A stretch of 64,000 nt of DNA from Takakia lepidozioides. Its lineage: Eukaryota > Plantae > Bryophyta. How positions within the stretch are numbered: position 1 is the stretch's first letter; each line of letters opens with the position of its first letter. Below are positions 24,130-59,599 of this stretch, in pieces. A program made the position numbers and the translations under genes. The stretch covers positions 81,282,001 through 81,346,000 of the forward strand of contig CM060732.1 in NCBI GenBank assembly GCA_030704615.1, given 5' to 3'. The notes beneath the pieces are model-generated. The model did no database searches and had not been told where the DNA came from. It was given only the letters and a program-made list of their open reading frames with translations.

Positions 24130-26141
24130 TACCGGAATTGTTGGGTGTCAGTATGCCCTCCATGTACATGAGAGAGAAGTTTCATAGTCAATGGAGAAGG
24201 TAGGTGGCGATTCTGGAATGCCGCCTTAAAAACACGAAATATGTGGGTCATTGGAGCGATGCGCTCTCCAAACAAACTACAATGGGAAGAAGCAATCAAC
24301 TCAGAGTTGGATTCATTGATACAAACACAAGCATGGACACTCACTATGTTGTCTGCAGGACGAAGAACCATTGGTTGCAAGTGGATCTTCAAAGTTGAAG
24401 TACAAAGCTGATGGATCTATTTACCGGTACAAAGCTCGTCTTTTAGCTAAAGGCTATGCACAAATTCAAGGAGTGGATTACAATGAAACCTTATCACCAG
24501 TGGTGAAGATTTCTTCTATCAGAGTGTTGTTAGCTCTTGCAGCTCAACATGATCACGAAGTTCATCAAATGGATATTAAGATCGCATTTCTAAATGGAGA
24601 ACTACAAGAAGAGATCTACATGAGACAACCTGAAGGGTTTGTACAAGGAAGAAGTGATATTGTGTGTAAGCTGCAAAAGAGTTTGTATGGACTCAAACAA
24701 AGTCCTCGAGCTTGGTATGCTAGGATCGATGTTTACCTCTTAAAGGCAAGATTTGAGCGAAGCATTGCTGACACAAACATCTATGTGAAAAAGATGGGAG
24801 AGCAATTTGTGGTCATAGCTCTATATGTGGATAACACAATCATTGTCACCAACGATCATCAAAGGTTGTTGCCAGAAACCAAAGCACTGTTGAGTGCTGA
24901 GTTTGCCATGACTGACATGGGTGAGATTCGGTTCTGTCTTGGTATTCAAATCAGCAGAGATCGAGTGAACCCTACAGTATTCATGCATCAACGACAATAC
25001 ATTGAGACAATTCTACAAAGGTTTAAGTTGGAGATGAGTAAGCCAACATCAATTCCTCTCGAAGTTGGTTTAAAACTTACGAAGGATATGGCATCTAAGA
25101 CTCAAGAAGAGCAAGAAGATATGAGGAAAACTCCTTATCAAAGCGCAGTCGGCAGTTTGATGTATTGCATGGTTTGTACTAGGCCAGACATTGCACATTC
25201 AGTGGGAGTGGTCTCACAATTTCTTTCAAATCCCGGACAAACCCATTGGAAAGCAGTGAAGAGGATATTTCGATATCTAAGAGGAACATCAACCTCTGGT
25301 CTACTCTACAAGAGAGTGGAAGATCCAAGTTTGTTGGGGTTTGCTGATGCTGACTGGGCAGGAGACGTTGATAGTAGAAAATCAACTTCAGGCCATTGTT
25401 TTCTCCTAGCAGGTGGAGCTGTATCTTGGTCTAGCAAACGACAAGTTGCAACAGCGTTGTCATCAACAGAAGCTGCGTACATGTCCATTACACAAGCAGC
25501 AAAGGAGGCTATTTGGTTACGGAAGTTGCTTGGAGATTTGGATCATCTCCAATCACTACCTACGACTCTCTATTGTGACAATCAAAATGCGATTGCACTA
25601 AGTCAGAATCCGAAATATCATTCAAGGACGAAGCACATTGAAGTGCAACATCACTACATACGGGAAGTTGTATGCAAGGGACAGATCAAGATGATCTATT
25701 GTGCTACAGGAAATATGGTTGCGGATGTTTTGACGAAGAGTCTACCACAAACAAAACACATGAAGTGTTCAGCCTTACTTGGTGTCTCTTCTCCAAAGAC
25801 AAACGAAGTAGCTTAATGATATGGTTTAATTGAGTGGAAGTGTTGGAAATAATTAAACATATCTAGAAGACTAAGAGTCTTGAAGGCCAAAGGTTTAGAA
25901 GTCTAAGAGACTATCTTGTTTAACTCACCTTTGGAAGGTGAATGGCTAGAAGGTGGATGGTCACCATAGTGGAAGTGACCAAGTAGGACTTTCTAGAGAC
26001 CTTATTGTACAAGCTCGGGGGTAAAGCCACTAGTCTAAGTGTAAGAGTACGATGGTGGCTTCTATGGTTGGGAGGAGAGCTTTAGTTTTAGCTTTAGTCT
26101 AAGACTTTAGTTCTTGTTCATGTTCTTGCTCAATTCTAACA
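24130..26141 (+). mobile_element. 5'-truncated Ty1/Copia retrotransposon (RT-RNase H, PPT, 3' LTR)
   Basis: WEEAINSELDSL..IGCKWIF (frameshifted), YKARL, QMDIKIAFLNG, SLYGLKQSPRAW, YVDN, ADWAG, RTKHIEV. PPT TGAGTGGAAG at 25831-25840. LTR TGTTGG...CTAACA at 25841-26141. Confidence 0.93.
24371..25816 (+). pseudogene. Copia reverse transcriptase/RNase H, inactive (YVDD to YVDN)
   Basis: 481-aa ORF with Copia RVT_2 and RNase H motifs. The catalytic Asp is replaced and the N-terminus is frameshifted. Confidence 0.9.
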
Positions 26142-26775: not shown

Positions 26776-27495
26776 TTATCGTGTGAGCTTGCAGCTCTTG
26801 GAATTCACCTTGGCCGCCTGGCCCGAAACTGTGTTCAGGCTCACGTTCAAATCGCAAGTCACATGAACCCAGAAATGGAAAGACTTGTAAGATCCGATCT
26901 TCACGCGGGCCTTCACGTCCACCCTGACCTGCAAAGGAATGCTGTTTTTCGAGATATCGGTTTCTAATGAAGTTCCCAGTTTCTGTTCGAGAGCGAAGTC
27001 CGTAACACGCACCTCTGAGGTCACTGTGGTAGTGTTCTGATGACCCTGATAGAAGGGAGCAATTGTGCTGTTTCCAAACTGAGTTCCATCGTACGAAGTG
27101 TACATGTTGATGGTGTCATACTCGATGCCTATTTTCTTGTTGGGATTTCGGGCCTCAACAGTGTAAACGATGTCCGAGTTCAGCAACAATCGAGAGTTAT
27201 TTGAAGTGACAGCGAAATCTTTGAACTGAACATCTTGGACGGAGTAATGAGGAGCCTTCGGTCGCAGAGTCAGCCAGATAACAAGAGCGGCGATGCCTAA
27301 AACCAATACTATGGAGATGAGAATGGAGCAACACCATGAGAAGACACAACAGCAGCAACCGCGACCATGGCGACGGCGAGGTGGGGAAGCGTAGGTGGCG
27401 GGTGGAGGAAGGGGCCCAACATCAGCGCCCATCATTTTGTACACGTTCGGCCTCGCTGGTAGTGACTGATCCGGGTAGATCCTTTCCCCTGTCAT
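26776..27495 (-). CDS. NDR1/HIN1-like (LEA_2 domain) protein, paralog 1
   Basis: Intronless. MTGERIYP...Pro-rich stretch, Cys cluster, one TM helix, LRPKAP, ARNPNKKIGIEYD, FYQGHQNT, terminal CKL. Confidence 0.92.
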   Translation of the reverse strand: MTGERIYPDQSLPARPNVYKMMGADVGPLPPPATYASPPRRRHGRGCCCCVFSWCCSILISIVLVLGIAALVIWLTLRPKAPHYSVQDVQFKDFAVTSNNSRLLLNSDIVYTVEARNPNKKIGIEYDTINMYTSYDGTQFGNSTIAPFYQGHQNTTTVTSEVRVTDFALEQKLGTSLETDISKNSIPLQVRVDVKARVKIGSYKSFHFWVHVTCDLNVSLNTVSGQAAKVNSKSCKLTR

Positions 27496-29912
27496 TGCTC
27501 GAATCTGCTCCTCACAGTGTTTTTCTTCCGAGTTCACTCTTTCTCAGGAAGAGCTGCCTGACAACCTCCCAGTGACACAATGCGTCCGAATCGCCAAGAG
27601 AAACCAATTTTCCTGTGGAAAACCCAAGTCTTGCGACAGGCAGCAAAAGAGAGAGAAAACCGTGGAAAGTCTTGTACTGCTTCAGGCTGATATTGTCGAT
27701 CACAGCATACAAAGGAATGATCGATTTGCGCTTAGCTCAATGCAATACAAGAGAGCTCTAGAAGCTACATATACATACAGAAGAAGGTTGGCTGGTGAAG
27801 CTGGCAAGATTGCGACAGGAAGGCGTCCAAACGCGCAAGGAACAAGCGCGTCATCAAAGTACTGTTCACCGCCGTCACTGTGCCTTCCGAGTGTTTTCTC
27901 GCCAACAAAAGTGGAACACACGCATTCAGTGTTACCCACATACGGGAACTTGGGAATGCGTCAAATAACACAAAAAGCATGAACCCTTTTCTCTTGTGCG
28001 TACATCCCCTCTTCCTTCTTTCTACTACCCTCTCTCTCACCTCATCACTGAGCGAAGCGCTCCAGAGGTGACTCTTCGCTCACATGTTTATAACTAATGG
28101 TCACTCCACACCGAACTTCCTCTTGGTACCTCAAGGGACATTGAAATCCATCATCTCTTGCCAATTTATGTGGCAAGCGTGAGCAATTCTTACTGGATTT
28201 ACGTCTCTCGTAACATTACGTATGTCTTCTCTCATATTGCTATATGTAAATCATCACCAAGGAAGCATGTTTGCTGTCTGCAAAGCCTTCAACGCAGCTT
28301 TGTATATTTAGTGAGCCTGTAGTGTAAGTTTCTTTCTCGCGATCGGGTCCACCGCCAGTGTACTTCATTACCCAGGTTATAGAGATTTTCTCCTTCAGGG
28401 TTTGTCTCCCTGGGATTCATGAAAATTCCCTATCTCAATCTGGTACTCATTTGAATTTGGAGATCCGCAGCCAGCACGGAGACTGTGAGATTACCTTGCA
28501 AATGAGATCTGACATCTGATGTAGTTCCTCCAAACCCTAGCCAATCTACTGAGCAGGGTTAAAACTGCAGGGATCAGACTCTCTTCCTATTCTCTTTCAT
28601 GCGGAAAAAGGTAGAAGAGATTTTCAAGTACCTGAATACTAGGAAGGACTGACCGTCTAGATGAAGCTGGCTGTTTCTTAGGCCATGTCGGAAGCACGAA
28701 GATCTGTGACCCGAACAAAACGAAGTTGGGCATAAACTTCCCCTGTACTCGTTTCCAGTTTGTGACATGGGTGAGGAGTGAGTACCTTAAGGATGATCAT
28801 CTGAAGGCTTACCTACTACCCCTCAACACAAGACTGAAATTTGAAGTTGGGAGTCTGCCTTCGAACATTAAAAGAAAAGGGAGATCGTCAAAGTGCGCGC
28901 CGCCTGAAACAACAACCAGTTTCTGCTACGATGTCCAGGGTATTCTCATCAGAGCGCTACTCTTCAGGACCATCAAGAACATAGTCCCAGCATCTCTGTT
29001 CACCAACTTCTAAAAACCTCGAGGCTGGCCCTAAAGCCCTGTTCCTGTTGAGGTCTAATTGCTGGGCAGCTCACACACAGCAGATTCATGCGTGTGTAAA
29101 TTCTTGTGTGATGGGCTTTCTAGAGGAAATCTGGAAAGCCTACACTAACTGTTTATACCAACCAAGGTAAGTCCCACTACTGGAGTGAGCCCGTCACAAA
29201 GTTAGTGGCTGTTTCCTCTTGTTCCGCCCAAACTGAGCGCCGGGTCTATGGCCGCAAGGCTACCTCAAACAATCTTCTGAGTACATTCGTTCATCATGAC
29301 CATCTTTGCTCTTTGCTTTTGAAACATGTCTAAGTTTCCCCATACATGTAAAGCCGACGAGTAGCCGAAGTGTGAACTGCTTGTAAACAACGCTCATATA
29401 ATTTCAACTTTCAGGAGATAGAAGGCCCGAGGCTTTCAAGCGGGGAGTATGAGGGCTTTTGACTGTGGCAGATGTTCCGATGCCAGGGCTGTCTCAGTGT
29501 TTGTTTGTTTGTTTGTTTAATAAAAAATTCTAAAAAAAAAAATCAAAAAAAAAAAATAAAAAAAATCCCTTTGGACAGCTGCAGGTATGAAGATCTAGTC
29601 AGCAGAAAATGGTCTGGTAGCTCAAAATGCCAATGGCTGAAGACAAGCTTCAATTTTGAATTTGAAAAAAAAAAGAGGCGGTCAATTAAAAATCAGCATC
29701 TTTGCCCAGCAACTCAGTGCAAACATGCTGAAAGAATCACTGTACAGGTGCCTAGTAGGCTTTTTGGTTTCTCCTCATCCCCGCTTTGGGGAGGGCAACA
29801 GGGAGACCTCCTTTGGCCAGATCGGTTACATCGATTCAAACCATCAGGCCCTATCGCACAAACTAAACTTCTCGGTGTCACTTTGGTAAGATTGGATTCA
29901 TACCAATCTCTT

Positions 29913-30635
29913 TTATCGTGTGAGCTTGCAGCTCTTGGAATTCACCTTGGCCGCCTGGCCGGAAGCTGTCCCCGGGCTCACATTCAAGTTGCAAGTCACG
30001 TTCAAGTTGCAAGTCACGTGAACCCAGAAATGGAAAGACTTGTAAGAAACAACCTTCACGCGAGCCTTGACGTCCGCCCTGACCTGCAAAGGAATGCTGT
30101 TGTTCGAGATATCGGTTTCTAATGAAGTTCCCAGTTTCTGTTGGAGAGGGAAGTCCGTAACACGCACCTCTGAGGTCACTATAGTAGTGTTCTGATGACC
30201 CTGATAGAACGGAGCAATTGTGCTGTTTCCAAACTGAGTTCCATCGTAGGAAGTGTAAATGTTGATGGCGTCGTACTCGATGCCTATTTTCTTGTTGGGA
30301 TTTCGGGCCTCAACAGTGTACACGATGTCCGAATTCAGCGAGTAGTTTGAAGAGACTGAGAAACCTTTGAACTGAACGTCTTGGATGGAGTACTGAGGAG
30401 CCTTCGGTCGCAGAGTCAGCCAGATAACAAGAGCAGCGATGCCCAAAACCACAATAACAAAGATGAGAATGGAACAACACCATGAAAACAAGCAACAGCA
30501 GCAACCACGACCATGGCCACGACGAGCTGGGCGCGAGTAGGTGGCGGGTGGAGGAATGGGCCCGATATCAGCACCCTTCATTCGGTGCATGTTCGGGTTT
30601 AGTGGTACATGATCCGGGTAGATCCTGTCTGCCAT
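29913..30635 (-). CDS. NDR1/HIN1-like (LEA_2 domain) protein, paralog 2
   Basis: Same motifs as paralog 1 and highly similar. Start taken at MADRIYP by alignment. Carries an in-frame TCNLNV duplication. Confidence 0.92.
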   Translation of the reverse strand: MADRIYPDHVPLNPNMHRMKGADIGPIPPPATYSRPARRGHGRGCCCCLFSWCCSILIFVIVVLGIAALVIWLTLRPKAPQYSIQDVQFKGFSVSSNYSLNSDIVYTVEARNPNKKIGIEYDAINIYTSYDGTQFGNSTIAPFYQGHQNTTIVTSEVRVTDFPLQQKLGTSLETDISNNSIPLQVRADVKARVKVVSYKSFHFWVHVTCNLNVTCNLNVSPGTASGQAAKVNSKSCKLTR

Positions 30636-33099
30636 TGCTGTAATTCTCTCCTTTTGAGCACAGTCCTTTCTTCCCGCGAACCTCCAATCCCTTTCAGCGA
30701 TGCGCCAGGCAACCTCCCACCAACGCAACGTGTATAGATCGCCGAAAGAAACAAATTTGGACCCCGTCTATGAAAACCCAGGTGAGCTTGCAACAGGCCC
30801 GGAAAGGAGAGACCAACACAGGTCTGCTCGATCGAGAGAGAGAGAGATAGAACACTGTTGGGTGAAATTCACTCACAGCAGCACGAATTTCTCTGTATGC
30901 GCAGTGCTTCAGGCTGACGTCGATCACAATGGGGAGATTCCCCAAAAGTCTTCAGATCTACGAGAGCTCGAGATGCTGAGACTCAATGGGAAAGATTATG
31001 GAAGAGAGCAGGATAAAGCGATATATATATAGGTGTTTATCAATGCACAACGAACGCGTCAATACGCGCACCGAGACAGAGAAGCGCGTACCCAAATTCT
31101 TTGTTTTGCCGTCGCTGTGCCGTCCCAGCGTTAATCCTCCGGACTAAGTCTCCCGACCCACCAAAGTAGAGGATTTTGTCTCACAATTGCATTGATTTTA
31201 AATGGGTTTTCCTAAGATGATCGGAAGGTGCCGAGCAAGATACCTACTCCCGAGCTGCAAGGCGATCGCCATCACTGCAAAATAGTCGTGACCACTCATC
31301 ACAGTCAACATACAATCATCGGGATTACTTTTGTTTTCCTCCGAATTTAGACGAACGTGTGCCTTTTTCTGGTACTAGCTGGATTCGTGGGGTCCATCTG
31401 CAGTAAACTGGCAGCTTCCATAGGGCGTCCATCTCACATATAGCTCATAAGGTGTCGCACATGCACACAGTGGACAGCCGATCACATGTACACACAATTT
31501 GTGTCTTAGTGGGCCAATGCTTCGTCACACTATCCGCCTTCAATGACGGGCTTCGAAAGTTCATTTGTTCAACTAATTTATTCGCCTCTTGAAAACAAAA
31601 AGGGAATTTGTGCTTCTGTTGCTTCGCAGCTGCAGAAGCCATGTGTCGGGCCGACCCCACCCACCTCCCCCTTATCTACTTCAGGCAGATGGTTGGGAAT
31701 ATATGCTTTTTCTATTCTGTTGTTTCTACTTTTCTTTCTCTGTTGGAGACGTTTTGCTCGTGTTGTACAATCACGTCATGTTCTGGTACTTAATAAAGCC
31801 CTCGGGTTTCAGCAATTTGCGTTCCATTCGATCTCCTGTCCTTTATTTGCTTTTTATTGATCCTTGCACCCACTTTGTTGCATCTCTGTATTAAAAAACT
31901 TGCTGCTGCTCGAGTAGATCACTGTTATACAGGCAGATTCATCTCCGAGAAAGATCGCAGAAGCAGTAGAGATCCCTCAGTTTCGCCATGCTGTATGGGG
32001 TCTTGGGACCCAAATGTTGACAAAATAGCAACCTTCTCCGTGAATTTTGGCCCGCAACTGCTGGCTTTCTCACAAATTCCACGGCAGCCCTATGTTTGCG
32101 GCGTTTCCGAGAGATCAGAGAGGTGGTTAGGGCATGGTGGCAACGGAGAAGGCGAGTCCCAATCCAAATACATATCTCATCTGTTGGATCTAACGTTTTG
32201 TGATACTCCGCTTGGTAGCAAAACGGGGTCACCTGGAGAGAATTGACCACATTAACGAATTAAGGATTGATCTTGACCTAAGATAGCTTCACTACTTGCC
32301 TTTTCCAGTGCATACTGTGCTCGATGTTACCAAGCATCCCATAGATAATAATTAGGGAAGTAAGGGCCAATCTCGTCAGTGCACTGGACACTCACTGGAC
32401 ACGGAAAGATAGCTCGGCCTCTATCGATCGCATTCTTTCTTTTGCCATTCTGAGAGTACGACTGAACAGTGAACCTCGCAAATCTTGTCGTAGGACTAGG
32501 ATTTCCAAATTAGTCAGAATGACAGTCAGATCCGGCGACCTTATGGGACTTGACCGTCATATCGATCAGGATTGAAAGGATGACTTCACTGCTACGTTGG
32601 CACCACGGAACCTCAATATGTACATAGTCATAATCTGTCAGAGCACGCGTGGAAAATCACACCTGACGATACATGTTGGGTGATGATCGAACAAGTATGT
32701 AACCGTCGTAGCATGATTTCAGCCATGGAGCGAGCTGGCTTTCCATGTAGATGAGACACATACAGGAAGATCGATCTGACTGTGATTCTCAGCATGAGTC
32801 CCAACACACTGTATCGCAAATTATACAATCCGGTAAGAATCCGCATTCCACCTAAACTTGGGGCACGATCTGCAAGTTGGTGTCGGAAGGTGAGGCACCC
32901 ATCTCTTTAACAGAAGCAGTGCTGATCAGTGGGAGAAAGATCGATGATGATCAGTGAATCTGTGATGCTCAAAACACGCTTAGGGTTAGCATTCTCGTTG
33001 TGGCACCAATTGGTGGATTGAACGATTGAACCCACAACCACTTCTGAGGTTATGTGTGCCCACGTTTTATATTCCAGGAAAACCCAATTTGCTCTTTTT

Positions 33100-44300: not shown

Positions 44301-45450
44301 TGGGCCAGACACTATGATAGGAGATTTTGCGGTAGTACCTTGTAATCTTTTCATCTCCTCTACCAGTGCGTTGTACATTATGTCCGCCCATGGACTCTTG
44401 TCCCTTCAAGCCTTTGAGGATTTCCTCTGTGAAGGATCTGCTCAAATATTGTTGTTCTGTTTCAGGGCAATCAGAACGTTCAATACTTGGCCTATGTCTT
44501 TTAACCCTGGGTACAAGCTTTGGTACAAGCATAACCTGAGTTTTAAAGAAACTCCCTTCTTGGAATAAATCCCCTATTTGCAGTTCTTCTCTGTGTTCCT
44601 CCACATACACATGACCTTCTGGCAATTGAAACAATTGCTGGAGGTATAGGGGAGTAATCATTAATTCAACTCCCTTCACCGTTGTTGTTCCTGTCTTTGG
44701 CTCAAAGTTCTGCAAAAATTGTAACATGTACTGTCTATGGTGTAGTGTCCAATCCATGCTTTGCAATCCTTCCAATCTCAGCTCCTTCAGTATCTTTATC
44801 GCCTGTGGGGTAGCCATCGTTTGTTTTTGCAGAATTGTGTGCTCTTCACCCTGATTCCTCCATTCCTCTCACTCTCTTCATCTTAGACTCACAGAACTGC
44901 TTTGGCTGTAACAACTGCAGGAATGCCTGTAGTGCACAAAGCAGAAAACGTATGGTTGCCGCAGAAAGGTATGGGTAATCTCTTGTAAGCCTGCGGGGCT
45001 TGCAAGCATTGTTCAAGAGAAAAGCTCTGCTCTTTCGTTTCGCGTCTCCGCCATTGCGTAAGTAATATTGCGAGCGTATAGTCTGTTAGCTCCTTCATAG
45101 TTTCCAAGTTATAGCATTTATGGCCTGTCCTGTCGAGACGCCCGTTACTCAGAACGACGCCGTCTCTTGCGCTTAATTTCCCTCCATTTTCTTGATCATT
45201 TCTCTGGTTTTCTATTGGCTGTATCAGCTGTGACTGGATTTTAACTTTTATCTTCTTAGTGGACTTTCCCTGTTGGATAGTCCACTAGGATCACACATGC
45301 GACATGAATTCAGTTTTTCTGTACTTGCCGTTCGTTCTGTTTCCCTTTTTCCGTATTCATTAATGGCCCGCTTTCATCCCTTTGACGCGCCGTTCCAGTC
45401 CTCTTTCTTTTTGACACCTGTCCTTGCACTTCATTCTCTGCTGTGTGTCG
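41344..45450 (-). pseudogene. 3' extra ORF of element A copy 2 (multiply frameshifted)
   Basis: ORF pieces from 44889-45107 down to 41344-41865 match the 1-4073 protein. Confidence 0.85.
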
Positions 45451-45483
45451 CACCCTGACCTCCACGTGTCTATTTTAAATTAA

Positions 45484-45983
45484 NNNNNNNNNNNNNNNNN
45501 NNNNNNNNNNNNNNNNNNNNNNNNNNNNNNNNNNNNNNNNNNNNNNNNNNNNNNNNNNNNNNNNNNNNNNNNNNNNNNNNNNNNNNNNNNNNNNNNNNNN
45601 NNNNNNNNNNNNNNNNNNNNNNNNNNNNNNNNNNNNNNNNNNNNNNNNNNNNNNNNNNNNNNNNNNNNNNNNNNNNNNNNNNNNNNNNNNNNNNNNNNNN
45701 NNNNNNNNNNNNNNNNNNNNNNNNNNNNNNNNNNNNNNNNNNNNNNNNNNNNNNNNNNNNNNNNNNNNNNNNNNNNNNNNNNNNNNNNNNNNNNNNNNNN
45801 NNNNNNNNNNNNNNNNNNNNNNNNNNNNNNNNNNNNNNNNNNNNNNNNNNNNNNNNNNNNNNNNNNNNNNNNNNNNNNNNNNNNNNNNNNNNNNNNNNNN
45901 NNNNNNNNNNNNNNNNNNNNNNNNNNNNNNNNNNNNNNNNNNNNNNNNNNNNNNNNNNNNNNNNNNNNNNNNNNNNNNNNNNN
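45484..45983. other. Assembly gap (500 N)
   Basis: Run of N between the integrase and the extra ORF. Confidence 1.
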
Positions 45984-45989
45984 GGAGTC

Positions 45990-48900
45990 TTGCAATTCCA
46001 TTCTTTTTCCCCTCCGTTCTCATGGTAGATAACAGAATTCCACTGGAAGTAAGCGCTTCATACCATAAACTAATTGGAAATGGTGTATACTTTGTGGTGA
46101 CTTTATACGAAGTCCTGTATGACCATAAAGCTGTCAGCAGCTTTGTATCCCAATCCGTTCTGTTGCATTGACTATCTTAGCCAAGATAGTACATAGTATT
46201 TTGTTGGTAGCCTCTGCCTGTCTTACCTGTGGGTAATATGTTGTACTCTTTTATGCACAATCATAACTCTTTAGTCAATAACTCAATGGTCTCATTCATG
46301 AAGTGACTTCCTTGATCACTGATAAATTCTAAGGGACATCCAAATCGTGTAAGTATGTTCTCGTACAGGAACCTTGCTGTGGACTTGGCTGTGTTGTCCC
46401 TCAAAGCTTTAGCTTCCCCCACTTTGTAGTATAATCAGTGGCTGTAAATTATGTACCTGTTTTGTGTATTCTTGATGGTGGATTAATTGTCCAACAAAGT
46501 CTAGTCCCCATTTCTGAAATGGTTCCGTAGGCATTGTAGGATGCAAGGCCATTCTTCCTGATCTCTGCAAAGGTCCTAGCCTCTGACATTCATCACATTT
46601 TTGACAATACTCATGTACATCTTTGAACAACGTAGGCCACCAGTATCCTGCGAGTAGTATCTTTCTACTGGTAGTCTCTTCTCCAAAATGACCTCCAGCC
46701 ACTCCTTTATGAACTTCCTCCAAGACTTTATTTCTTCATGGTGGTACAAGCATCGTTTTAGTACTCCTCAGGTCCTAACTTATACATTCTGCTTCCTACC
46801 TAGTAAAAGGTAAAGCTCTGATAGCAATTCTCTTCCTCTGCTCCTTACCATAACTAGTGGGCACTGACCATGAACAAGGTAGTATCTGATTGGCCACTGC
46901 CAATCTAACCATTCATCTACACTTCCTTGCACCTCCATTACATAACTCGCATCAGGTACTGATCGTCCACTCCTGTGGCGGCTCTCCTGTTGTTAGTCGT
47001 GACAAATGATCTGCCACAAGATGCAACGGCCAGGCTTGTAAATAACCTCAAACTCAAACTCATGCAAGATTATTAACCACCTCGCTATCCTTCCACTTAT
47101 CAAAGGTTTGTTCACCAGATATATCAGAGCCTGGTGATCCACATAAAACATAAACTTTCTTCCCAATAGGTAATGCCTGAATTTCTTCACTGCATAGATC
47201 ATTGCCAATGCTTCTCTTTCCGTTGTGCTATAGTTCCTCTCAGCACTGTTCATCAACCGGCTAGCATAGTACACAGGTGAATCTATATTCCCTGTAACAT
47301 TCTGGGCTAACACTGCTCCAACGCTTCTCCTGATGCATCGCAGTGAACATGAAATACTACATGCCAGTGAGGGTTAATCAGCACAGGTGTAGTTGTTACT
47401 GACAGTGTAAGTTCCTCAACGCCTGTTGACATTCAGCTGTCCATGCAAACACTGCATCTTTCTTCAGAAGCTTGCTCAATGGTGCTGCTATTTGTGCATA
47501 CCTTTTGACAAATCTTCTGTAATAACTGGTTTGCCCAAGGAATCTCCTTAACTCTTAACATTCACTGGTGGTGGAGAGACTTTAATGGACTCTGTCTTCC
47601 TGGGATCCACAAGGAGTCCCTTCTTACACACAATGTGTCCCAGAAGCACCCCTGAGTTCACACAGAAAGTACACTTCTCTGGGTTCAAGCCCAGACCTCT
47701 CATCCTGCATCTGGCCAGGCATAACTCCAATTTATGCAAGTGCTCATTCTTAGAGCTGTACACACTGAAATCATCAAAACACCTGCATGAAATCATCCAG
47801 ATACTCTTGAAAAGATTCACTTATCACTCTCTGAAAGGTCGCTGGTGCATTACAAAGCCCAAGGGCATGACTTTGTATGCATAAGCCCCCCAGTCTGTGA
47901 TGAAAGCTGTTTTCCCTTGGTCTTCTTCTGCCACTTGCACTTGATTATAACCACTGAAGCCATCCATGAATGAGTACATCTCATGGCCTGCCACAGTGTC
48001 TAATACTGCTTCTGTGAATGGCAAAGGGAAAGGATCTTTCTTCGTACAAGCATTCAGCTTCTTATAGTTCACACATACTCTTAGTTTGCCATTCTTCTTG
48101 GGAACTATAACAATGGGTGACAACCAAGTTGTATACTCTATTGGGTATATAAACTTAGCCTCAGCCAACTTCTTTATCTCTTCTCCAACCTTCTGTGCGT
48201 AGTTGGGATTCATTCTATACCTCGCCTGCTTGATTGGTACTGACCCTGGTTCCAGTTCATTTTATGCTGACAGACTTCAGGTGGTATCCCTTTTAGATCC
48301 TCATAGCTCCAAGCAAATACATCTCTGTATTTGATGAACAAGCTTTTAGCTTCTTCGAAGAATTCTGGCTCCAAATCAGCTCCTACTTTCACCATTCTCG
48401 GTTCCTCCTGAGTTCCCACATTTACTTCTCTCACCTGCTCATCAGCTGTGATTGTCCAACCAGTCACCACTTCATCCTTTAAGCTCACAGTGGCTGGTTC
48501 TTCTAGGATTTCTATCTCTCTCCTTTTCTTCATAGAAATGTGGTGGGTAACAGTTGGTTTCCTCTTCAATTGGTGTTGCTGTCACTACACCACAGCAGAT
48601 ACCTCTCAAACAACTTAGGCTTTCCAGCCGCATCTCTGCAACCTGCTCCCATTCTGGGTGTGCAGCAAATAGGGTAGCTTCCTGCTCCTCATCCAGTCCT
48701 CCCTTCCAGTCATACTCTCTGACTCCTCGAGGTCTTCTTGTAGCAGGTAATCTACTAGATTTCTTTGTGGTAATTTGTATCTCGTGCATCCCATTATGCA
48801 CAGTTAGTAACTGAGAATTCCAGTCATGGAATACCCTTGCCTGTTTCAGCCACGGACGTCCCAATAATAAGGAGTAAGCCTCCATGACTTCATCCATTTT

Positions 48901-49100: not shown

Positions 49101-52100
49101 TAGTTCTGTGCTTCCAATTCTCAATTGGATTACTGGCATAGAATCATCAAAGTCCATGACTGGTTCTCGCCCTTCCGGCTTCACATTATAACTGGTCACC
49201 TTGCTGTTCAGGTCTGTGTTTCCTGTCTCTTGGGCAATTCGATTGATTGCCTGATACAGCCTGTGCCTACAATAAGGTGCCACAGCTAATAGCTGTCCAA
49301 TGGTAATTTCTGCTTTGGTCTGACATATTACTTCAGCCAAAGTCTCTTCATTACTTTGCATGTCTGCATCTTCTTTTTTCCTTTCTTCCTCACTCCCCTC
49401 TTTTTCTCCATCCGAATCAGAGGAATCTGCCACAGGAATATCCGTACTCTTTTGCATTTCCCTTATAGTATCTGCCACTTCCTTGTGCAGTTCCTTCTCA
49501 TCCTTCCAAGTCTCTTCATCTTCAGGCATATCATTGCCACTTCCAGTCTCATCTTCTTCCTCTTCTACTGGAGGTATTAGTTTGGCTTTACTTCTTGTTA
49601 CTATCATTGTACTTACTTCTGGTACAACACATGGCCTAACCATGTGAGCTGCCACCACTGGGCCCTCATTCACAGGAGCTCTCATCTCATTCTGGTGTCT
49701 TATCCAGAATGAACAGGCTGCCTTGCGATGTCCTGGCTGATTACAATAGTAACATAGCTCTTCACCATTGGGTCCTCGCCCTTGGTCTGGTCTTGGATTA
49801 TTTCTATAATCCTGATTCCGGGCTGGTAATTCCCCCTTGGATTACCCTGATAGTTGCCTCTGGAATTTCCTTGGTAATTCCCTCTTGAATTACCTCTCCC
49901 TTCCATGCCATTGTTATAGCCACCAGACCTACCATAGTGGTCCTGATCATTGCTTCTTCTTGGCTGGGGCTGCACCTGATGCACCCTCACTTGCCTAGGT
50001 TCTCTTGCAGCTGTCCTTCTGTTGTAGTAACAATTCTCAGTAGAATGGTTATCCATTTTACAGATAGTACAGTGTTTCTCCTTCATGTGGCATTCTGTAG
50101 TGGTATGGCCTTCATTCTGGCACTTTGCACACCATACACCCTTCCTCCAATGTGTTGCAGCCTCTGTGGCATACTTCTTCAAGATTTCTTCCAATCTTTT
50201 CTCATAGTTATCCCTCTTCAACTTTTCCTTTCTCTTACTCTTTCTTTTTAGTTCTTGCTCTTCTTCTTCATCTGACTCATCTTCAGAGTCCTCATCTTCC
50301 TTTTTCTCTCTCCTGAGCATTCCCAATTGCTCAATTCTGTTTGCAGTTTCAAATGCCTCCTCCACTGTATTATGGGGTAACATATCCACTTTCTTCTGCA
50401 ACTCTGGTCTTAGTCCACTCACAAACCAAGTCTTCTGTAAACCGGGTGCTGGTACTGCAGCCAGCTTTTTCATCATCAATTCCATCTTCTCCATATACTC
50501 TTCAACAGTTTCATGCTTCTTCTGCTTCAGCTGTTGTAAACTTCCATACACTTCATCCTCAGTTTTACTTGTCCTGAACCTATTTCGAAATGCTGTATTC
50601 AAGCCATTCCAGGTTAGGAAATGATTATCAGGGAATCTTGCATACCATTCACTTGCTTTCTTGATAAGTGAACAAGGAAACAGTCTCATCTTGGCATCAT
50701 CGCCATTCTCATTGTTCACTATACACATGTGCTCAAATTGGCTAATGTGTACATCGGGATCCCCTTTTCCTGAATATATTGGAAAGGGTGGTTTTGCCCG
50801 TGTTGGTTGTAACGCCATCTGTGGCCCTACCTTCTGCCCACTGACAGGTGCTGGCACCCTTGCTGGTGCTGGTCCTTCTGGACCTGTTGTTTTTGTGGTG
50901 GATCTTCCACCAAGTGGTGGCCCTTGAGCACTCCCTGCTTCTGGCCCCACGATATTCACAGTATTCCCAGCTTCAGTTGCACTACTTCCCACACTCCCTG
51001 TCCCCCCAGAGCCAGATCCAGGCAGCCCGCCTGATCCCCCTGAGCCGACACCTTCGTTGGCCTGTGATCCAAGTGCTCCACTTGATCCAGGTCCAACGGG
51101 TTGGGATGTCCTGGTTGTAGTCTCAACCTCAGCTGTTGGGTCTACTTCTTCATATTCTTCCTCTTCCAATTTCTTCTCTTGTTTTCATCCTCCAAGTTCT
51201 GCCCTTGGGTTTCTTCTTCACTCATGTAACTCAACTGTAATGGTGTTGGAGAGTCTGAACTCTCCGTTGGCTCTGCCACATCCTCATCTCCTTCTTCATC
51301 TTCTGCTTCAGAAACTGGAGTTCCTGCTTTTGGTGTTCCATGCCAACTCTTATCAAAGATTTCTGTCAAGTCTTTTATCCAAGGATGTACCTCAGATCTT
51401 TCACCTCGTGATTGATCTTCTTCCTGTACCAATTCCTTAATCTTTCTTGCAAAGAAACAGAAGGAGTGGCATCCAACTCTAGTTCTTCCGGTATAGGTGA
51501 TGCACTTTTCGATCTTGATGGTGTGAGAGGTCCAGATGATTCCCCTATGTCTATTCCTCTCTCCCAAAGATATGGATAATTAGCTTTCAGATAGCTTTCT
51601 CTTTTTGATGAATATCTTTGTCGTCTAGCTTCTCTTTCATCACTCATGTCCATGTCTTTCATTTCTTTTAATGTGGCAATAACCAAAACTCTCTTCTGTA
51701 ATATCTCTCGTATATGCCTGGATTTCTTTCAAGCTTCAATGCACCCTTGGCTATACTTGAAGTCTCCGTTACCATATAACCATATGGCAAACAAGTCTGA
51801 AAAGCTGTTCTTGGTGTGAGTTTGATCCACAAAATATCCTTTGGAATCCAATTCTTTACCAGTACAAGCTCTTCATGCATATGGGTATAAACATTCACCT
51901 TTCTTTCTTCCCAACTTCAAACTCTACTCGTTTAATGGATAGCAACGCTATCACATAAACTAATGTTGGTAACCAACGTGCTCTTCCTCTACAGGCTACC
52001 TGATAAATCTTTATCACTCCTTTCTCCAGACCCCATTCTGGATCAGCATCATGCACTCGTTTAAGAATATTTTCTTTACATCCGTCTGGCAATTCCAAGA

Positions 52101-53559: not shown

Positions 53560-53973
53560 ATGACATTTTCTGTTTGAGGGGACCGGCAGGCAAGAGGTAC
53601 CGGCCACTGCGGGTCTTGTTGGACTCGGGAGCTCAGCCATTGATGTTGGGCAGAGCTGCTATTGCAGGCTTGGGCCTCACGGAGGCGGATATGGAGCCTT
53701 GTCCTTTCCAGATACAGACGTCTCTGGGAGGATCGGGGCATGACACAGCGTGAGTTAGCTATCAGACTACGACCGGATCACCCTACAGATGGCTCAGTGA
53801 TGCGAGCCAAGGCCATTGTGACAGACGCGGTCTCGTACGATGTCCTGGTTGGTGGGGCAGTGTTGTACCCCATGGGCTTCACCCTGGATTTTTGGGAGGA
53901 GTCAGCTTCCTATAGGTCTGCATGGCAGTCAGGGGAGGGCCGGCGTGTGCAGCTCCCTGTGACGTTCATATGA
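53560..53973 (+). pseudogene. Retroviral-type aspartic protease of element B
   Basis: RVLLDSGAQPLMLG (Asp at ~53622) and SYDVLVGGAVLYPMGF, with one frameshift near 53740. Confidence 0.85.
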
Positions 53974-54321
53974 GGAGTTGCGGTTGCCCAGCGAGGCAAG
54001 ATGCCGACACTAGCAGCATTCACAGCGGCAGTGAGTTGGCCTGGAGAGTTGCTTAAGGGCAACGCTCATTCAGAGGATGTGCCACCTCCAGGAGAGCAGG
54101 ATGACATGTATGGTATGGCGGAGTTGCCTACCATGGTTGCTCAGACTCCATTGTGGGGCACGAGCAAGGATTTGCAGCGGGATGCTGATCGACGGGTGTA
54201 ACAAGCCTGGGTGGAGGCTTTTGTACCGTCAGGAGAGGAAGAGAGTGCGGGGATTACACCAGGACCACCTCAGTTGTCTCCATTGGACACCACACCTATT
54301 GTGTGGCAGTATCCGGATGAA

Positions 54322-54382
54322 GGCATTTGTCTTCTGGACTTGTTTGGCGGGATCAGCAACGGATTGGCTGTTGTGTTACAGG
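54322..54382 (+). pseudogene. C5 DNA methyltransferase motif I (element B, part 1)
   Basis: ICLLDLFGGISNGL, a SAM-binding FxG motif, in the same frame as the protease C-terminal half. Confidence 0.8.
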
Positions 54383-55078
54383 CCCGGGGGGTGCATTCTT
54401 TATAAAATGTCCGTATCATGTGCGTTCGCCGCCTAATAAAAAAACCCCCTGTATACGGGTCCTTGGATCATTTTCCCCCCCTCTGTACATACATTTTGAA
54501 GATTATAAAACCCCCTCATGTAAATATATAGAAATTTGTAATTTTAAAAAAGTACCGTCTTCTGTATGTATATTTTCCTTTCCAATAATTAAAAAATACC
54601 CTCAAATATGTATATGTATGTTTTTATATTATATCAAGTTTATTCATTTAAAAATAGAATAAAAATCTAATTAATTAATTTAAAAAAAATTGTTTGCCCT
54701 CGATAAAACTTGTTTTGGAATCTCACTTTGAACAAAAATCAGATGCAGAGAGGAAGAGACATTGTCAATGCCCGATGTGCAAGAGGCCTGAAGAAAGTTT
54801 CCATTTTCTGATATACAGTCCTGGGTATTTTCATCAGAGAGTGAACCTCTTGAAGACCATCAAGACCTAGTCACTGCACCTCTGTTCATCAACTAGGACA
54901 GTTTTTGAACTTGTTCTACAGTTTCAACCTTCGCAAGGTCCAATTATGTTCAAAACCTACTGTTGAGAATTCCTCTCCAAAAAGAGATTTCGTACGCCTT
55001 TGCTGCCACTGTTGGAGTCCAACCTAACTCGCAGTTGACAGAGTTCAATACATTCAATTAGGTGACAAGCATTTCATT

Positions 55079-55335
55079 TCACCAATACTCCCCACAAGAA
55101 CAAACACCATTTTGGAAGTGGTGAAAGCGGTTTGCATCCCGTACAACAATCTCTTGCTTAGTTATCTTTGAGATGAATTTGGTGGCTGTGTGGCAATCAC
55201 CACACATCTGAAGATTCCTGATGATCCCCAAAGACATCCTAGAGGGTGTGTTGATAAGCCCAAAAACAATGGCAAACTTCTCATTGTGGTGGCAAAGAGA
55301 CGATTCTTTAAGCTCTTCCTCAACATCATGCAATG
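55079..55335 (-). pseudogene. DYW cytidine-deaminase domain fragment of a PPR editing factor
   Basis: LHDVEEELKESSLCHHNEKFAIVFGLINTP...NLQMCGDCHTATKFISK...VRDANRFHHFQNGVCSCGEYW. Confidence 0.93.
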
Positions 55336-58300
55336 CCAAGCGGGCTTCACCCCTTTGCACATCATTTGCTCATAGGTCTCCAAAGCCTCCATCCCGCGCC
55401 CTTGCTGTGCATATCCTGCAATCATCGCACTCCACGACAGCACATCTCGTTCAGCCATACCGTCGAACACTCCCTTCATACATGTCCACGAGGGTATTGT
55501 TCATAATGACATTTGATACAATTGCAAATCTGACAATGTCGCCATGGACCTCTTTGCCCTTTTCCAGAGCTGACAGGCTTGCACACACATTGCAAATGTA
55601 CACAAACGTGATGTGGTCGGGCTTCACCCCTTCCCCCATCATTTGATCATAGGTCTCCAAAGTCTCCATACGACGTCCCTGCTGTGCATACCTACAAGCA
55701 CCGCACTCCACGACACGACACCTCGTTCAGCCATGGAAACTTCCTTCGCATCCTTAATGCACCCACATTTGGCATACATGTCCACCAGGGGAGTGTTCAG
55801 AATGACATCTGGTACAATTCCAGCTTTGACAATGTCACCATGGACCTCTTTCCCCTTTTCCAGAGCTCGCAGGCTTGGACACTCATTGCATCCTGCCAAC
55901 ATTATATTCCACGTGATCAAAGATCGTTGAGGCATTATGTTGAACACTTGGTGAGCATCGATGATGCTCCCGCACATAACATACATGTTGACAAGGGTGT
56001 TGAGTAGAAAAACATTGTGGACTCCCTCTCTTGATCCTCTTTCAGAAGCTGTGGTCATGGTTGAGGTGCCTGATTTTATCAACTGTGCCGCTGCAGCTGC
56101 AGCCTTTAGTTGACCATCTACCCATGCAGGTTTTTTGTAGCTACTGACCCCCAAATGGAATCAAGGTAATCTGGAGCTTGAAGTCCAGCCCTCTTGGATG
56201 AATCTGGACCCACACTCTATCCATGCTCATTCGGAAAAAACAGGGAAAAACAGGCTGAAATGTGTTGAAGAAGGTACCTTCATTAGCAGCGCCTTGTTCT
56301 ATCAAATGCACTGCTGCCGTTGCTGTTTCCAGTTGACCATCTACCCACGCAGCTTTCTTGTAGCTATTGATCCGCAGGGAATCAGAAGTAATCTTGTGTT
56401 TAAAATCAACCTCTTGGATGAATGTGTTCCTCGACACCAGCTCGTTCAGCCATAGTGTTGAACACTCCCTCCGCATCCTCAATGCTCCCACAAATGGCAT
56501 ACATGTCCACAAGGGTATTGTTCATAATCACATCCAGTACAATTCCAACTTTGGTGATGCAACCATGCACCTCTTTGCCCTTTTCCATGGCTGCAGGCTT
56601 GCACACGCACTACAAACGCACACAAACATGATGTGGTCGAGCTTCACCCCTTCCCCCATCATCTGCTTTCAGGTCTCCAAAGCCCCATCTCGCGCTCCTG
56701 CTCTGCACACCCTGCAAGCATCGTGTTCCACGACACCACATCTCATTCACCATAGTGTTGAATACTCCCTTGGCATCCTCAATGCTCCCACATTTGGTGT
56801 ACATGGCCACTAGAGCAATGTTCAGGATGACATCTGGTACAATTGCAGATTTGATGATGTCACCAGGGATCTCTTTGTCCTTTTCCAGGGCTGCCAGACG
56901 CACTGCAAACGCACACAAACGTTATGTGGGCAGTTTCACCCCTTCCCCCATCATTTGCTCATAGGTCTCCAAAGCCTCCATCCCGTACCCCTGCTGTGCA
57001 TACCGTGCAAACATCACAATCCACGACACCACATCTCGTTCAGCCATAGTGTTCACTCAAGATTCACTCAACCAGCTAATTTTCAAAATTCAATATGGAT
57101 ATTTAGGGCCGATTCTGATGAGAGGGAAAAACGGGGTGAAATGTGTTGAAGAAGGTGCCTTCATTAGCAACGCTTGATTTTATCAATTGTACCGCTGCTG
57201 CTGCAGCTTCCACTTGACCATCTATCCATGCAGGTTTCTTGTAGGTAATCATAGGTAATCTGAAAACGGCTCCTGGCAAATCACCTTCATCTTCCCAGAC
57301 AATCTTCTCAGCTCAGCATGGATTTCCTTAATTCTGGGATGCAACTTGTCATCTACAACGAAGGTGAGCACCCTGTTGCAAACCTCAATGCAGCAGCGAC
57401 CTGGCTTTTTTTCAACCCCTCTGACCTTCATCATTCTTCTCACATTTCCAGTATCAACCCACCTGCCAGCTACTGCATAGATGTTTGATAGCAACATAAG
57501 TCGTGACATCCAGTTCATTCCACTTGAGGATAGATGTTGCCGCACGTTCAGGTCCACTGCCTCATCCAGTTGTCCCCCACGTCCAAGAAGGTCCACCATG
57601 CAGCCAAAGTGCTATACTGTCAGAGTAACACCATGATCTTGAATCAGGGAATCAAAGTAGTGTCTTCCTTCATTCAGAACGCCAGTGTGGCTGCATGTAG
57701 AGAGAACACAAACTGCTTCAAGCTGTTCTTTTGCATTCCTTCAAATAGTTGCAGGACCTCCCTATGACAACCATGTTGTGCATATCCTGCGATCATTGCA
57801 TTCCACGACACCACATCTCATTCAGCCATATTGTCGAACACTCCCTTTGCATCCTCCATGCACCCACATTTGGCATACATGTCCACCAGGGCAGTGTTCA
57901 GGATCACATTTGGTACAATTCCAGCTCTGACGATGTCGGCATGCACCTCTTCGCCCTTTTTAGGGCTGCCAGGCTTGCACACGCACTGCAAACACACACA
58001 AACGTGATGTGGTCGGGCTTCACCCCGTCACACATCATTTGCTCATAGGTCTCCAAAGCCTCCATCCCACGTCCTTGTTGTGCATACCCTGCAAGCACCG
58101 CACTCCACGACACCACACCTCGTTCAGCCAGAGTGTCGAACACTCCCTTTGACTTTGTAAATGAAGATAGGTCCCTTTGATGGGGCATGGATTGAAGTGG
58201 TTTCGCAGTCCTACTTGTTGTTTCTTCCTCGCCATGTCCATCTTCTGCTTTGGGCGGGGTCTAGGGCTGGCAAGGTTTTAGCAACCAGTGTCATGACTCT

Positions 58301-58925
58301 CTCTCTCTTTCTCTTTGTTCTGCTCAATCTGGGTGCAGGGTCTATGGCCACAAGGCTATCATGAGTACTTTCTCCCTCACACACACCTCTCCCTGTTCCG
58401 CCCAAACTGGGCACGGACTGGGTAAATAGCCACAATGCAATGACAAACGTCGTATGAGTACATTTCGCTCTCTCTACTCTTGGCAATAGACTGAAATTGA
58501 AATGCAATCGGGGAGTGTACCTTTGAACAAACAAGCAGATGCAGAGAGGAAAGGTAGCCTATCAATGCCCGACGTGCGGTAAGCCTGAAGACTTAACATT
58601 TTCTGATACATTTCCGGTGTACACTCCCATCTGAGAGCGACCCTCTTCACTTACATCAAGAACAGAGTCCTTGCACGGTTGTTCGCCAAGATGCACCCAC
58701 ATTTTGCAAACATGTCCACCAGGGTATTGTTCCGAATGACAGCTGGTACAATTCCAGCTCTGAAGATGTCGCCATGGACCTCTTTCCCCTTTTCCAGAGC
58801 TGCCAGGGCAGTGTTTAGAATGACATTTGGTACAATTCCAGCTTTGACAATATCCCCATGCATCTCTTTGCCCTTCTCTAGGGCTGCCAGGCTTGCACGA
58901 CGCCACATCTTGTTCAGCCATCTTC
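55336..58925 (-). pseudogene. Mosaic of PLS-class PPR fragments, including an E/E+ domain with PG box (~57290-57700)
   Basis: Repeated ALEKGKEVHGDI, LVDMYAKCG.IEDA, VVSWSAM..GYAQQGRG.EAL and KPDHITFV motifs; MVDLLGRGGQLDEA...LSNIYA...KKPG. Many deletions and frameshifts. Confidence 0.9.
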
Positions 58926-59274
58926 GCGGAAGGGAAGGCGAACGCGCGAGAGGAGATAAGAGGAGGAGAGGGAAAAGAGAAAGCCGCGGGAGGGAAGGGG
59001 AGAAAGATCGCGGGAAGACAATAAAAAAAAAAACAAACAAACAAAAGGACGAACCCGCGATTTGATCCCGCGGTGCATCGCAGCCTAATCATCGTTCTTA
59101 CCACTACACTACCCCTGAAAACTCAACAACCCCCTCCTGTAATATTATATTTAAGGTGTTTTAAACCCCCCTCTGTATGTATAATGTTGTATATGGGGGG
59201 GTTTAAAATACCCCCTCCTGTACACGCACATGGCTGGTACATTTAATGAGGAGTGTACCTCCCAGGGTTACAGG

Positions 59275-59387
59275 CAGGTGTATGAGTTCGGCGTTACCTG
59301 TATGTGGAGAGGGATGAGACTGCACGACACATCTCATTTCGTCATATTGCTCAGTTGATGCAGCAGTACCCTGAGTTGTTGCCGGTG
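59275..59387 (+). pseudogene. C5 DNA methyltransferase, part 2 (motif II/III region)
   Basis: After removing the TSD the frame continues VLQAGV*VRRYLYVERDETARHISFRHIAQLMQQYPELLPV. Confidence 0.8.
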
Positions 59388-59599
59388 TTTGTTTGAATAG
59401 TTCTAATTTTACTCGGGTCACAATTCAGAGCTCTTTGTGGTTTGAACATTTTACCTTTTTGGGGTGGGGTATACTTGGCAAAATAAGTACAATGTTCAAG
59501 GTCATTTTACCTACATCTGAATTGTTCTAAGGTTTTTTTTGTGAACGTTTGTCTACTAGTTTTGTGTGGACTAAGCAAGGATTATTTCCTACACAGTCT

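Follow-up and report, generated by a model that had tools for sequence, protein, structure and literature searches.

Capture of host-gene sequence by Pack-type DNA transposons is well established. The organellar RNA-editing factors of the PPR-DYW type constitute one of the most extensive gene families of plants, whose growth is generally ascribed to retroposition. Here we analyze an element of ~4.9 kb in a 64-kb stretch of Takakia lepidozioides DNA (contig CM060732.1, positions 81,282,001 to 81,346,000); this whole stretch is called the window below, and all coordinates refer to it. Gene-carrying transposons of this kind are known; what is unusual here is the cargo, derived from genes of the PPR-DYW type.

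Pack-MULEs (Mutator-like elements; Jiang et al. 2004, as cited in PMC2528002) and the wider Pack-TYPE group (Pack-CACTA and other transduplicating elements with terminal inverted repeats, TIRs) resemble the present element in having TIRs and a target-site duplication (TSD), no transposase and an interior of host-gene fragments. They likewise form multi-copy families, and their cargo is usually non-functional. In contrast, the superfamily of the present element is not fixed, hAT-like features being at least as good a fit. Moreover, its pieces all belong to one gene family and are co-oriented, rather than stemming from mixed unrelated genes, and they make up a near-complete set of modules (PDF, PLS, E, DYW and 3' untranslated region, 3'UTR). 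In grapevine, the Cactavine-5 CACTA elements contain a portion of a PPR gene along with the 3'UTR of that gene (PMC2528002), and are likewise cut-and-paste transposons with PPR coding sequence plus 3'UTR. However, Cactavine-5 is an autonomous-type CACTA element with a transposase open reading frame (ORF) and a 3-bp duplication, whereas the present element lacks a transposase, has a duplication of 8-9 bp and carries sequence of the DYW editing type.

In a 2026 survey, the expansion of PPR genes is put down to retroposition; for Takakia lepidozioides it reports 2,016 PPR genes, mostly arising by dispersed duplication and with limited marks of retroposition (PMC13386178). Retroposition also explains dispersed PPR copies beside transposable-element sequence. 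The copy described here, in contrast, moved as DNA between TIRs, with a TSD and no poly(A). Our literature searches yielded no publication that connects DYW-type PPR genes with Pack-type elements, or PPR genes of Takakia with transposons. The explanation we favor, with a probability of roughly 0.75, is that the element is one copy of a multi-copy, non-autonomous Pack-type TIR transposon.

Boundaries and empty site of the insertion

The inserted bases span 54383/4-59266. The exact 9-base word GTTACAGGC is present at both 54375-54383 and 59267-59275, the right copy repeating the left without a difference. It represents a target duplication of 8-9 bp, GTTACAGG[C], the ninth base of which is perhaps the first base of the element. 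Directly inside the two copies lie inverted arms of 43 nt (repeat pair I1; left arm 54383-54425 on the + strand, right arm 59224-59266 on the - strand) that are 72% complementary, and a gapped local alignment of the two ends begins at base 1 of each. This local alignment scored 43, compared to 25.9 ± 4.1 (maximum 40) in 200 shuffles. One degenerate pattern fits the first 13 bases of both arms and has no other occurrence in the window. Note that the ungapped register of the arms starts at 54383, and the duplication may therefore consist of 8 bp plus a chance C; the alternative register has a 9-bp duplication with a one-base slip in the arms.

In silico removal of 54384-59275 joined ...DLFGGISNGLAVVLQA to GV*VRRYLYVERDETARH..., with the junction reading ...DLFGGISNGLAVVLQAGV*VRRYLYVERDETARH.... 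Excision restored motif I of a C5 cytosine methyltransferase together with the downstream frame. One in-frame TGA is located two codons past the joint, and the host copy of the methyltransferase is thus itself decayed. Public contigs provided a counterpart of the excised state. A contig from the independent public run X5 (which belongs to a different study than the best DNA holder) aligns from 59267 onward and has a 29-letter loose end before 59267, of which 27 letters agree with the left flank 54346-54374. This indicates a paralogous copy of the host retrotransposon with an empty site, in which the duplicated word is single. An earlier note on this DNA had proposed an 8-9-bp TSD, imperfect TIRs and a true insertion whose removal restores the methyltransferase frame. 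These proposals are borne out by the exact repeat, by arms scoring above all 200 shuffles, by the rejoined motif-I frame and by the empty-site contig. Thus, 54383/4-59266 is a true insertion, by which the 4.9-kb element came to lie in a gene of a retrotransposon, within its methyltransferase region; the host is a land plant and probably a moss.

Adjacent to the inverted arms are two subterminal regions. The left one (54426-54725, + strand) is AT-rich, contains CCCCC(TC)NTGTA as a motif in three copies, each on the + strand, and is covered by 19-35 different contigs of the DNA run X1. The right one (59046-59223, + strand; up to 41 X1 contigs) contains three + copies and one inverted copy. The three + strand copies lie within ~150 bp of each end. 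The window contains 6 matches to the motif where 1.3 are expected, five of them within the ends, and all 5 matches in the window to a looser regular expression are confined to the ends. The motif is a good candidate for a transposase-binding site, to which a transposase may bind as in comparable elements.

As a separate observation, the subterminal stretches 54419-54566 and 59072-59222 align with a score of 67 in direct orientation versus 43 in inverted orientation, an effect of the repeated motif. The tips of the element are thus inverted, whereas its subterminal arrays face in one direction.

The host methyltransferase is split into opposed parts, 54211-54383 plus 59276-59400 on the + strand versus 61071-60146 on the - strand. 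Motif I and the following E.D..A stretch are on the + strand, while motifs IV (PCQ) and VI (ENV) and the C-terminal part are on the minus strand ~1 kb further (Pfam DNA_methylase, 4.4e-13). This arrangement could reflect an inversion or two head-to-head host copies. An aspartic-protease-like DSGA stretch lies upstream of the methyltransferase (~53600-53700).

The PPR-DYW cargo

Pfam identified a DYW_deaminase domain (PF14432, 1.2e-38) on the minus-strand ORF 55082-55360, an E_motif (2.8e-11) and an Eplus_motif (7e-6) on 57252-57599 of the minus strand, and PPR repeats on several further minus-strand ORFs. All protein-level PPR matches in the window fall between the two ends of the element, and all of them are on the minus strand. 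PPR-derived DNA accounts for ~3.3 of the 4.9 kb (about two thirds), the remainder consisting of the ends, a 3'UTR-like stretch and other repeats. The earlier description of the cargo as almost entirely PLS, E, E+, PG-box and DYW sequence on one strand is therefore correct as to identity and strand, but too generous as to extent. It also missed pieces with an N-terminal PDF-like motif. No transposase domain was detected by Pfam in the ORFs of the element on either strand, where PPR, E, E+ and DYW were the only hits, in agreement with the absence of transposase stated before. The non-PPR stretches, each <700 bp, are too short to encode one.

Read along the minus strand, the cargo begins with a leader-like low-complexity stretch, CT-rich and then T-rich as read from the sequence (58921-59045), followed by an ATG and a short PPR piece of two partial repeats recognized by protein matches (58920-58680). 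A copy of a repeat that we call repA (58521-58684) and a repeat-rich non-PPR spacer (58151-58520) come next. Pfam and protein matches then define a block at 58150-57255. It comprises PLS-type PPR repeats with stops and frameshifts (57600-58150) and a piece with E motif, PG box and E+ (the DYW start) that is cut after ..GKMK (57255-57599). The following block (57283-56442) consists of a partial PDF-like piece (57100-57283, with copies of repeat families D10 and D11 at 57123-57257) and further PLS-type repeats with stops and frameshifts (56442-57060; Pfam and protein matches). Two more partial PDF-like copies, which also belong to D10 and D11, occupy 56452-56068. The final coding block (56060-55079) starts with PLS-type repeats interrupted by frameshifts and stops (approximately 55361-56060; Pfam and protein matches), the last of which is fused at GVKP to the C-terminal part of the DYW deaminase with its EYW and stop (55079-55360). 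Downstream of this stop codon lie a 3'UTR-like stretch (54888-55078, - strand), from which contigs of X5, X6 and X8 run into the DYW coding end, and another repA copy (54726-54887).

The database E/E+/DYW fragment P0006 (161 residues) is divided between two places in the element: residues 1-76 align at 57482-57255, and residues 73-161 at 55348-55082, indicating that a single E/DYW module was split by 1.9 kb. The split holds further PPR repeats and the three partial copies of the N-terminal motif (..DFKHK..AWV..), which matches the N-termini of the long Diphasiastrum PPR proteins P0085 and P0086 (tblastn, E 0.001-0.002 in a small search). This motif resembles the 'PDF motif' of OSB proteins; there is no Pfam family that represents or matches it. 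The PDF motif itself was defined for OSB proteins (PMC6963530).

The DYW piece (ORF 55082-55360) carries the signature of a DYW deaminase, with HxE (HNE), CxDCH (CGDCH) and the terminal EYW followed by a stop. At its upstream joint ..GVKP of a PPR repeat stands where the DYW domain would have ..GYVPD, with a one-base frame slip. The position of this joint at a short shared motif (GVKPD vs GYVPD) suggests that it arose by template switching in gap repair or by unequal recombination between repeats. A working PLS-E-DYW gene has a single ORF that comprises PLS repeats, E1/E2 and an unbroken DYW domain. Here, stops and frame changes are present in every stretch of the cargo, and the E/E+ and DYW C-terminal pieces are 1.9 kb apart. 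The cargo is a dead patchwork pseudogene of at least five PDF-PLS-E-DYW pieces. Among named proteins, those of the lycophyte Diphasiastrum come closest, with 35-46% identity. A search for paralogues of the DYW ORF gave a best match only 69% identical, and none of ten ORFs of the element that begin with ATG has an exact counterpart in the protein collection.

Besides the PPR-derived pieces, the interior contains repeats of other kinds. repA (~160 bp) is present as the two copies described above, which are 72% identical, and as a third copy at 28916-29008, 26 kb away and outside the element. The spacer at 58151-58520 is partly like 29219-29287 and is matched by many contigs. We considered repA as the zinc-knuckle end of ORF2 of a long interspersed nuclear element (LINE), on the basis of a + strand pattern C..C...E...H.L...P.Y...R seen by eye only; Pfam found nothing, and repA stays an unnamed repeat. 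Likewise, a tRNA or short interspersed nuclear element (SINE) relic at ~59020-59115 (- strand) was suggested by eye from TAGTGGTAAG ... GGGATCAAATC, with A-box- and B-box-like words and a T-rich run, and was dropped after ARAGORN and Rfam (with lax filters) returned none.

Family membership and alternative explanations

We analyzed how often the element is represented in public contigs. Note that contig depth is not copy number (a caveat of the tool); only counts of different contigs were used for this purpose. In X1, contigs with a variant letter at positions of the left end numbered 35 at 54419, 19-21 at 54474-54476 and 22-24 at 54557-54558, and 41 were found at position 59192 of the right end. 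Thus, the ends are multi-copy, with 19-41 different X1 contigs at single end positions; the earlier note had named single-copy termini as one of the outcomes that would speak against it. Positions 54715-55035, inward of the left end and short of the DYW stop codon, are covered by 7-24 different X1 contigs. Furthermore, one contig of 181 nt from the non-PPR spacer (58150-58329, with 4 differences) reaches ~10x the depth of single PPR-like contigs, which hints at the existence of several near-identical copies of the interior. The contigs linking the 3'UTR-like stretch to the DYW end are the sole hint of PPR cargo in other members. Contigs that connect an end with the cargo across a longer span are absent; a 429-nt X5 contig on 54716-55141 comes closest. 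Within the window, blastn and pattern searches revealed no second copy of the ends, and a degenerate 28-nt TIR pattern had 0 matches in JGI metagenome contigs.

The locus thus combines TIRs, a TSD and a host-gene interior of co-oriented PPR, E and DYW pieces without a transposase, the features which define a Pack-type element and on which the earlier note had based its assignment; an empty site is present as well. The ends are multi-copy in contigs; neither a partner nor a second full copy was found in the window or in the metagenome scan. By analogy with what is established for Pack-MULEs and further transduplicating elements, the ~43-nt inverted ends would be recognized by a transposase whose gene lies elsewhere. 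This enzyme would act on these ends, and probably also the subterminal CCCCC(TC)NTGTA, and would cut the target with an 8-9-bp stagger, placing the element in the methyltransferase region of the retrotransposon. Where a transposase gene might be expected, the element carries the co-oriented patchwork of at least five PDF-PLS-E-DYW gene pieces and the 3'UTR-like tail. This cargo would have been captured by gap repair, and it presumably travels with the transposon family.

Several points weigh against this explanation, in addition to the limited meaning of contig depth. The TIRs are short and only 72% matched, and it is unusual for the subterminal motif to have one and the same orientation at the two ends. 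repA and the spacer are themselves repeats and could have arrived after capture. Neither a second complete copy nor an autonomous partner appeared in the window searches and the metagenome contig scan, and a cargo common to other members is therefore presumptive.

In an alternative explanation, the ends belong to an ordinary non-autonomous TIR element resembling a miniature inverted-repeat transposable element (MITE), and the PPR DNA entered this copy alone after it had inserted, through a nested insertion, gene conversion or a local duplication. Consistent with such a history, the summed depth in X1 drops from ~41,000 at the left end to ~12,700 in the 3'UTR-like stretch, and many members may therefore lack the interior, which also contains other repeats. 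However, there is no second TSD or insertion scar around the PPR block, 7-24 different contigs cover 54715-55035, on the way from the end to the DYW piece, and the 181-nt spacer contig reaches ~10x the depth of single PPR contigs. We therefore consider late arrival of the PPR DNA in this copy quite improbable.

A further alternative is that a working or regulatory PPR gene is supplied or newly formed by the element, with transcription from the right end yielding a new editing factor, or antisense or small RNAs directed at PPR genes. This question can be viewed in the light of X6 and X8, which are only guessed to be RNA runs. They behave like RNA, since the high-copy host flank is nearly absent (0-37, compared to ~800,000 in X1), while PPR stretches are deep. 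In these runs the 3'UTR-like stretch has a depth of 320-750, with contigs 96-98% identical to 54925-55342, indicating that transcription of related genes or copies extends through the DYW end. A functional gene would also be in keeping with the CT-rich leader and ATG that adjoin the right end in the orientation of the cargo, and with the retention of HxE and CxDCH in the DYW piece. In contrast, every stretch of the cargo has stops and frame changes, the E/DYW module is split, and the ends are nearly without depth in the RNA-like runs (0-18 on the right, 5-15 on the left). The RNA contigs that match are not identical to this copy, and the parent gene may be their source. None of the RNA-like contigs joins an end to the cargo, and nothing in them shows transcription of this copy or transcription from its ends. 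A working or regulatory gene is accordingly very improbable, and the non-autonomous Pack-type transposon remains our preferred explanation.

As to the superfamily of this Pack-type transposon, an 8-bp (hAT) and a 9-bp (MULE) reading are both possible, in line with the view of the earlier note that one copy does not settle the matter. Non-autonomous hAT elements (Ds-like) are similar in the possible 8-bp duplication, which fits the ungapped TIRs, in short imperfect TIRs and in subterminal regions of ~150-300 bp with a repeated motif. They differ in their end letters, in that the motif here has one orientation at both ends, and in that no partner transposase is known. The usual hAT ends begin with C/T-A-G/A, and those of the element do not; its terminal letters, CCC/CCT GGG.., are typical of neither hAT nor MULE. 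A Pack-MULE would be Mutator-like, with a duplication of 9-11 bp, TIRs of at least 100 bp and mobilization by a MURA-type transposase. The exact nine-base repeat GTTACAGGC would suit such an element. However, the ungapped TIR register starts at 54383 and leaves 8 bp, the TIRs have 43 nt at 72% where MULE ends are typically long and well matched, and short ends with subterminal motif arrays are more hAT-like. On balance, the evidence leans tentatively towards a hAT-like element, still short of even odds; a MULE is doubtful, and other superfamilies taken together are about equally so.

Surroundings of the element and meaning for PPR genes

The window is composed largely of nested retrotransposons. 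A Copia-type reverse transcriptase (RVT_2, 7.9e-65) and a Ty3-type gag (1.4e-12) are encoded at 24371-25813 (+) and 49703-51169 (-), respectively. Two LEA_2 (NHL/NDR1-like) ORFs located 3 kb apart at 26779-27537 (-) and 29916-30728 (-) (Pfam 4e-16 and 4.5e-14) are probably a tandem pair of ordinary host genes. Positions 45001-46000 form a 1-kb segment of 22% G+C with a strong AT skew, in a surrounding region of ~45% G+C.

The element may also be viewed on the scale of the genome, as one of tens to hundreds of Pack-type copies with PDF-PPR-DYW sequence as their standard cargo, in which case DNA transposition would have spread and recombined editing-factor modules in Takakia. We regard this extension as unlikely at present. 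If true, it could explain the numerous dispersed Takakia PPR duplicates that are without marks of retroposition, and some copies might be intact or feed gene conversion into working genes. The proposal in the earlier note that such a family copies and shuffles editing-factor modules, as a possible route to PPR family expansion, is likewise conjectural, this copy being a frameshifted and scrambled pseudogene. This copy, a dead pseudogene within another transposon, shows by itself only that the route exists. A multi-copy DNA transposon with PPR-DYW cargo would be a second, testable route beside retroposition, by which scattered homologous PPR pieces would be supplied for recombination.

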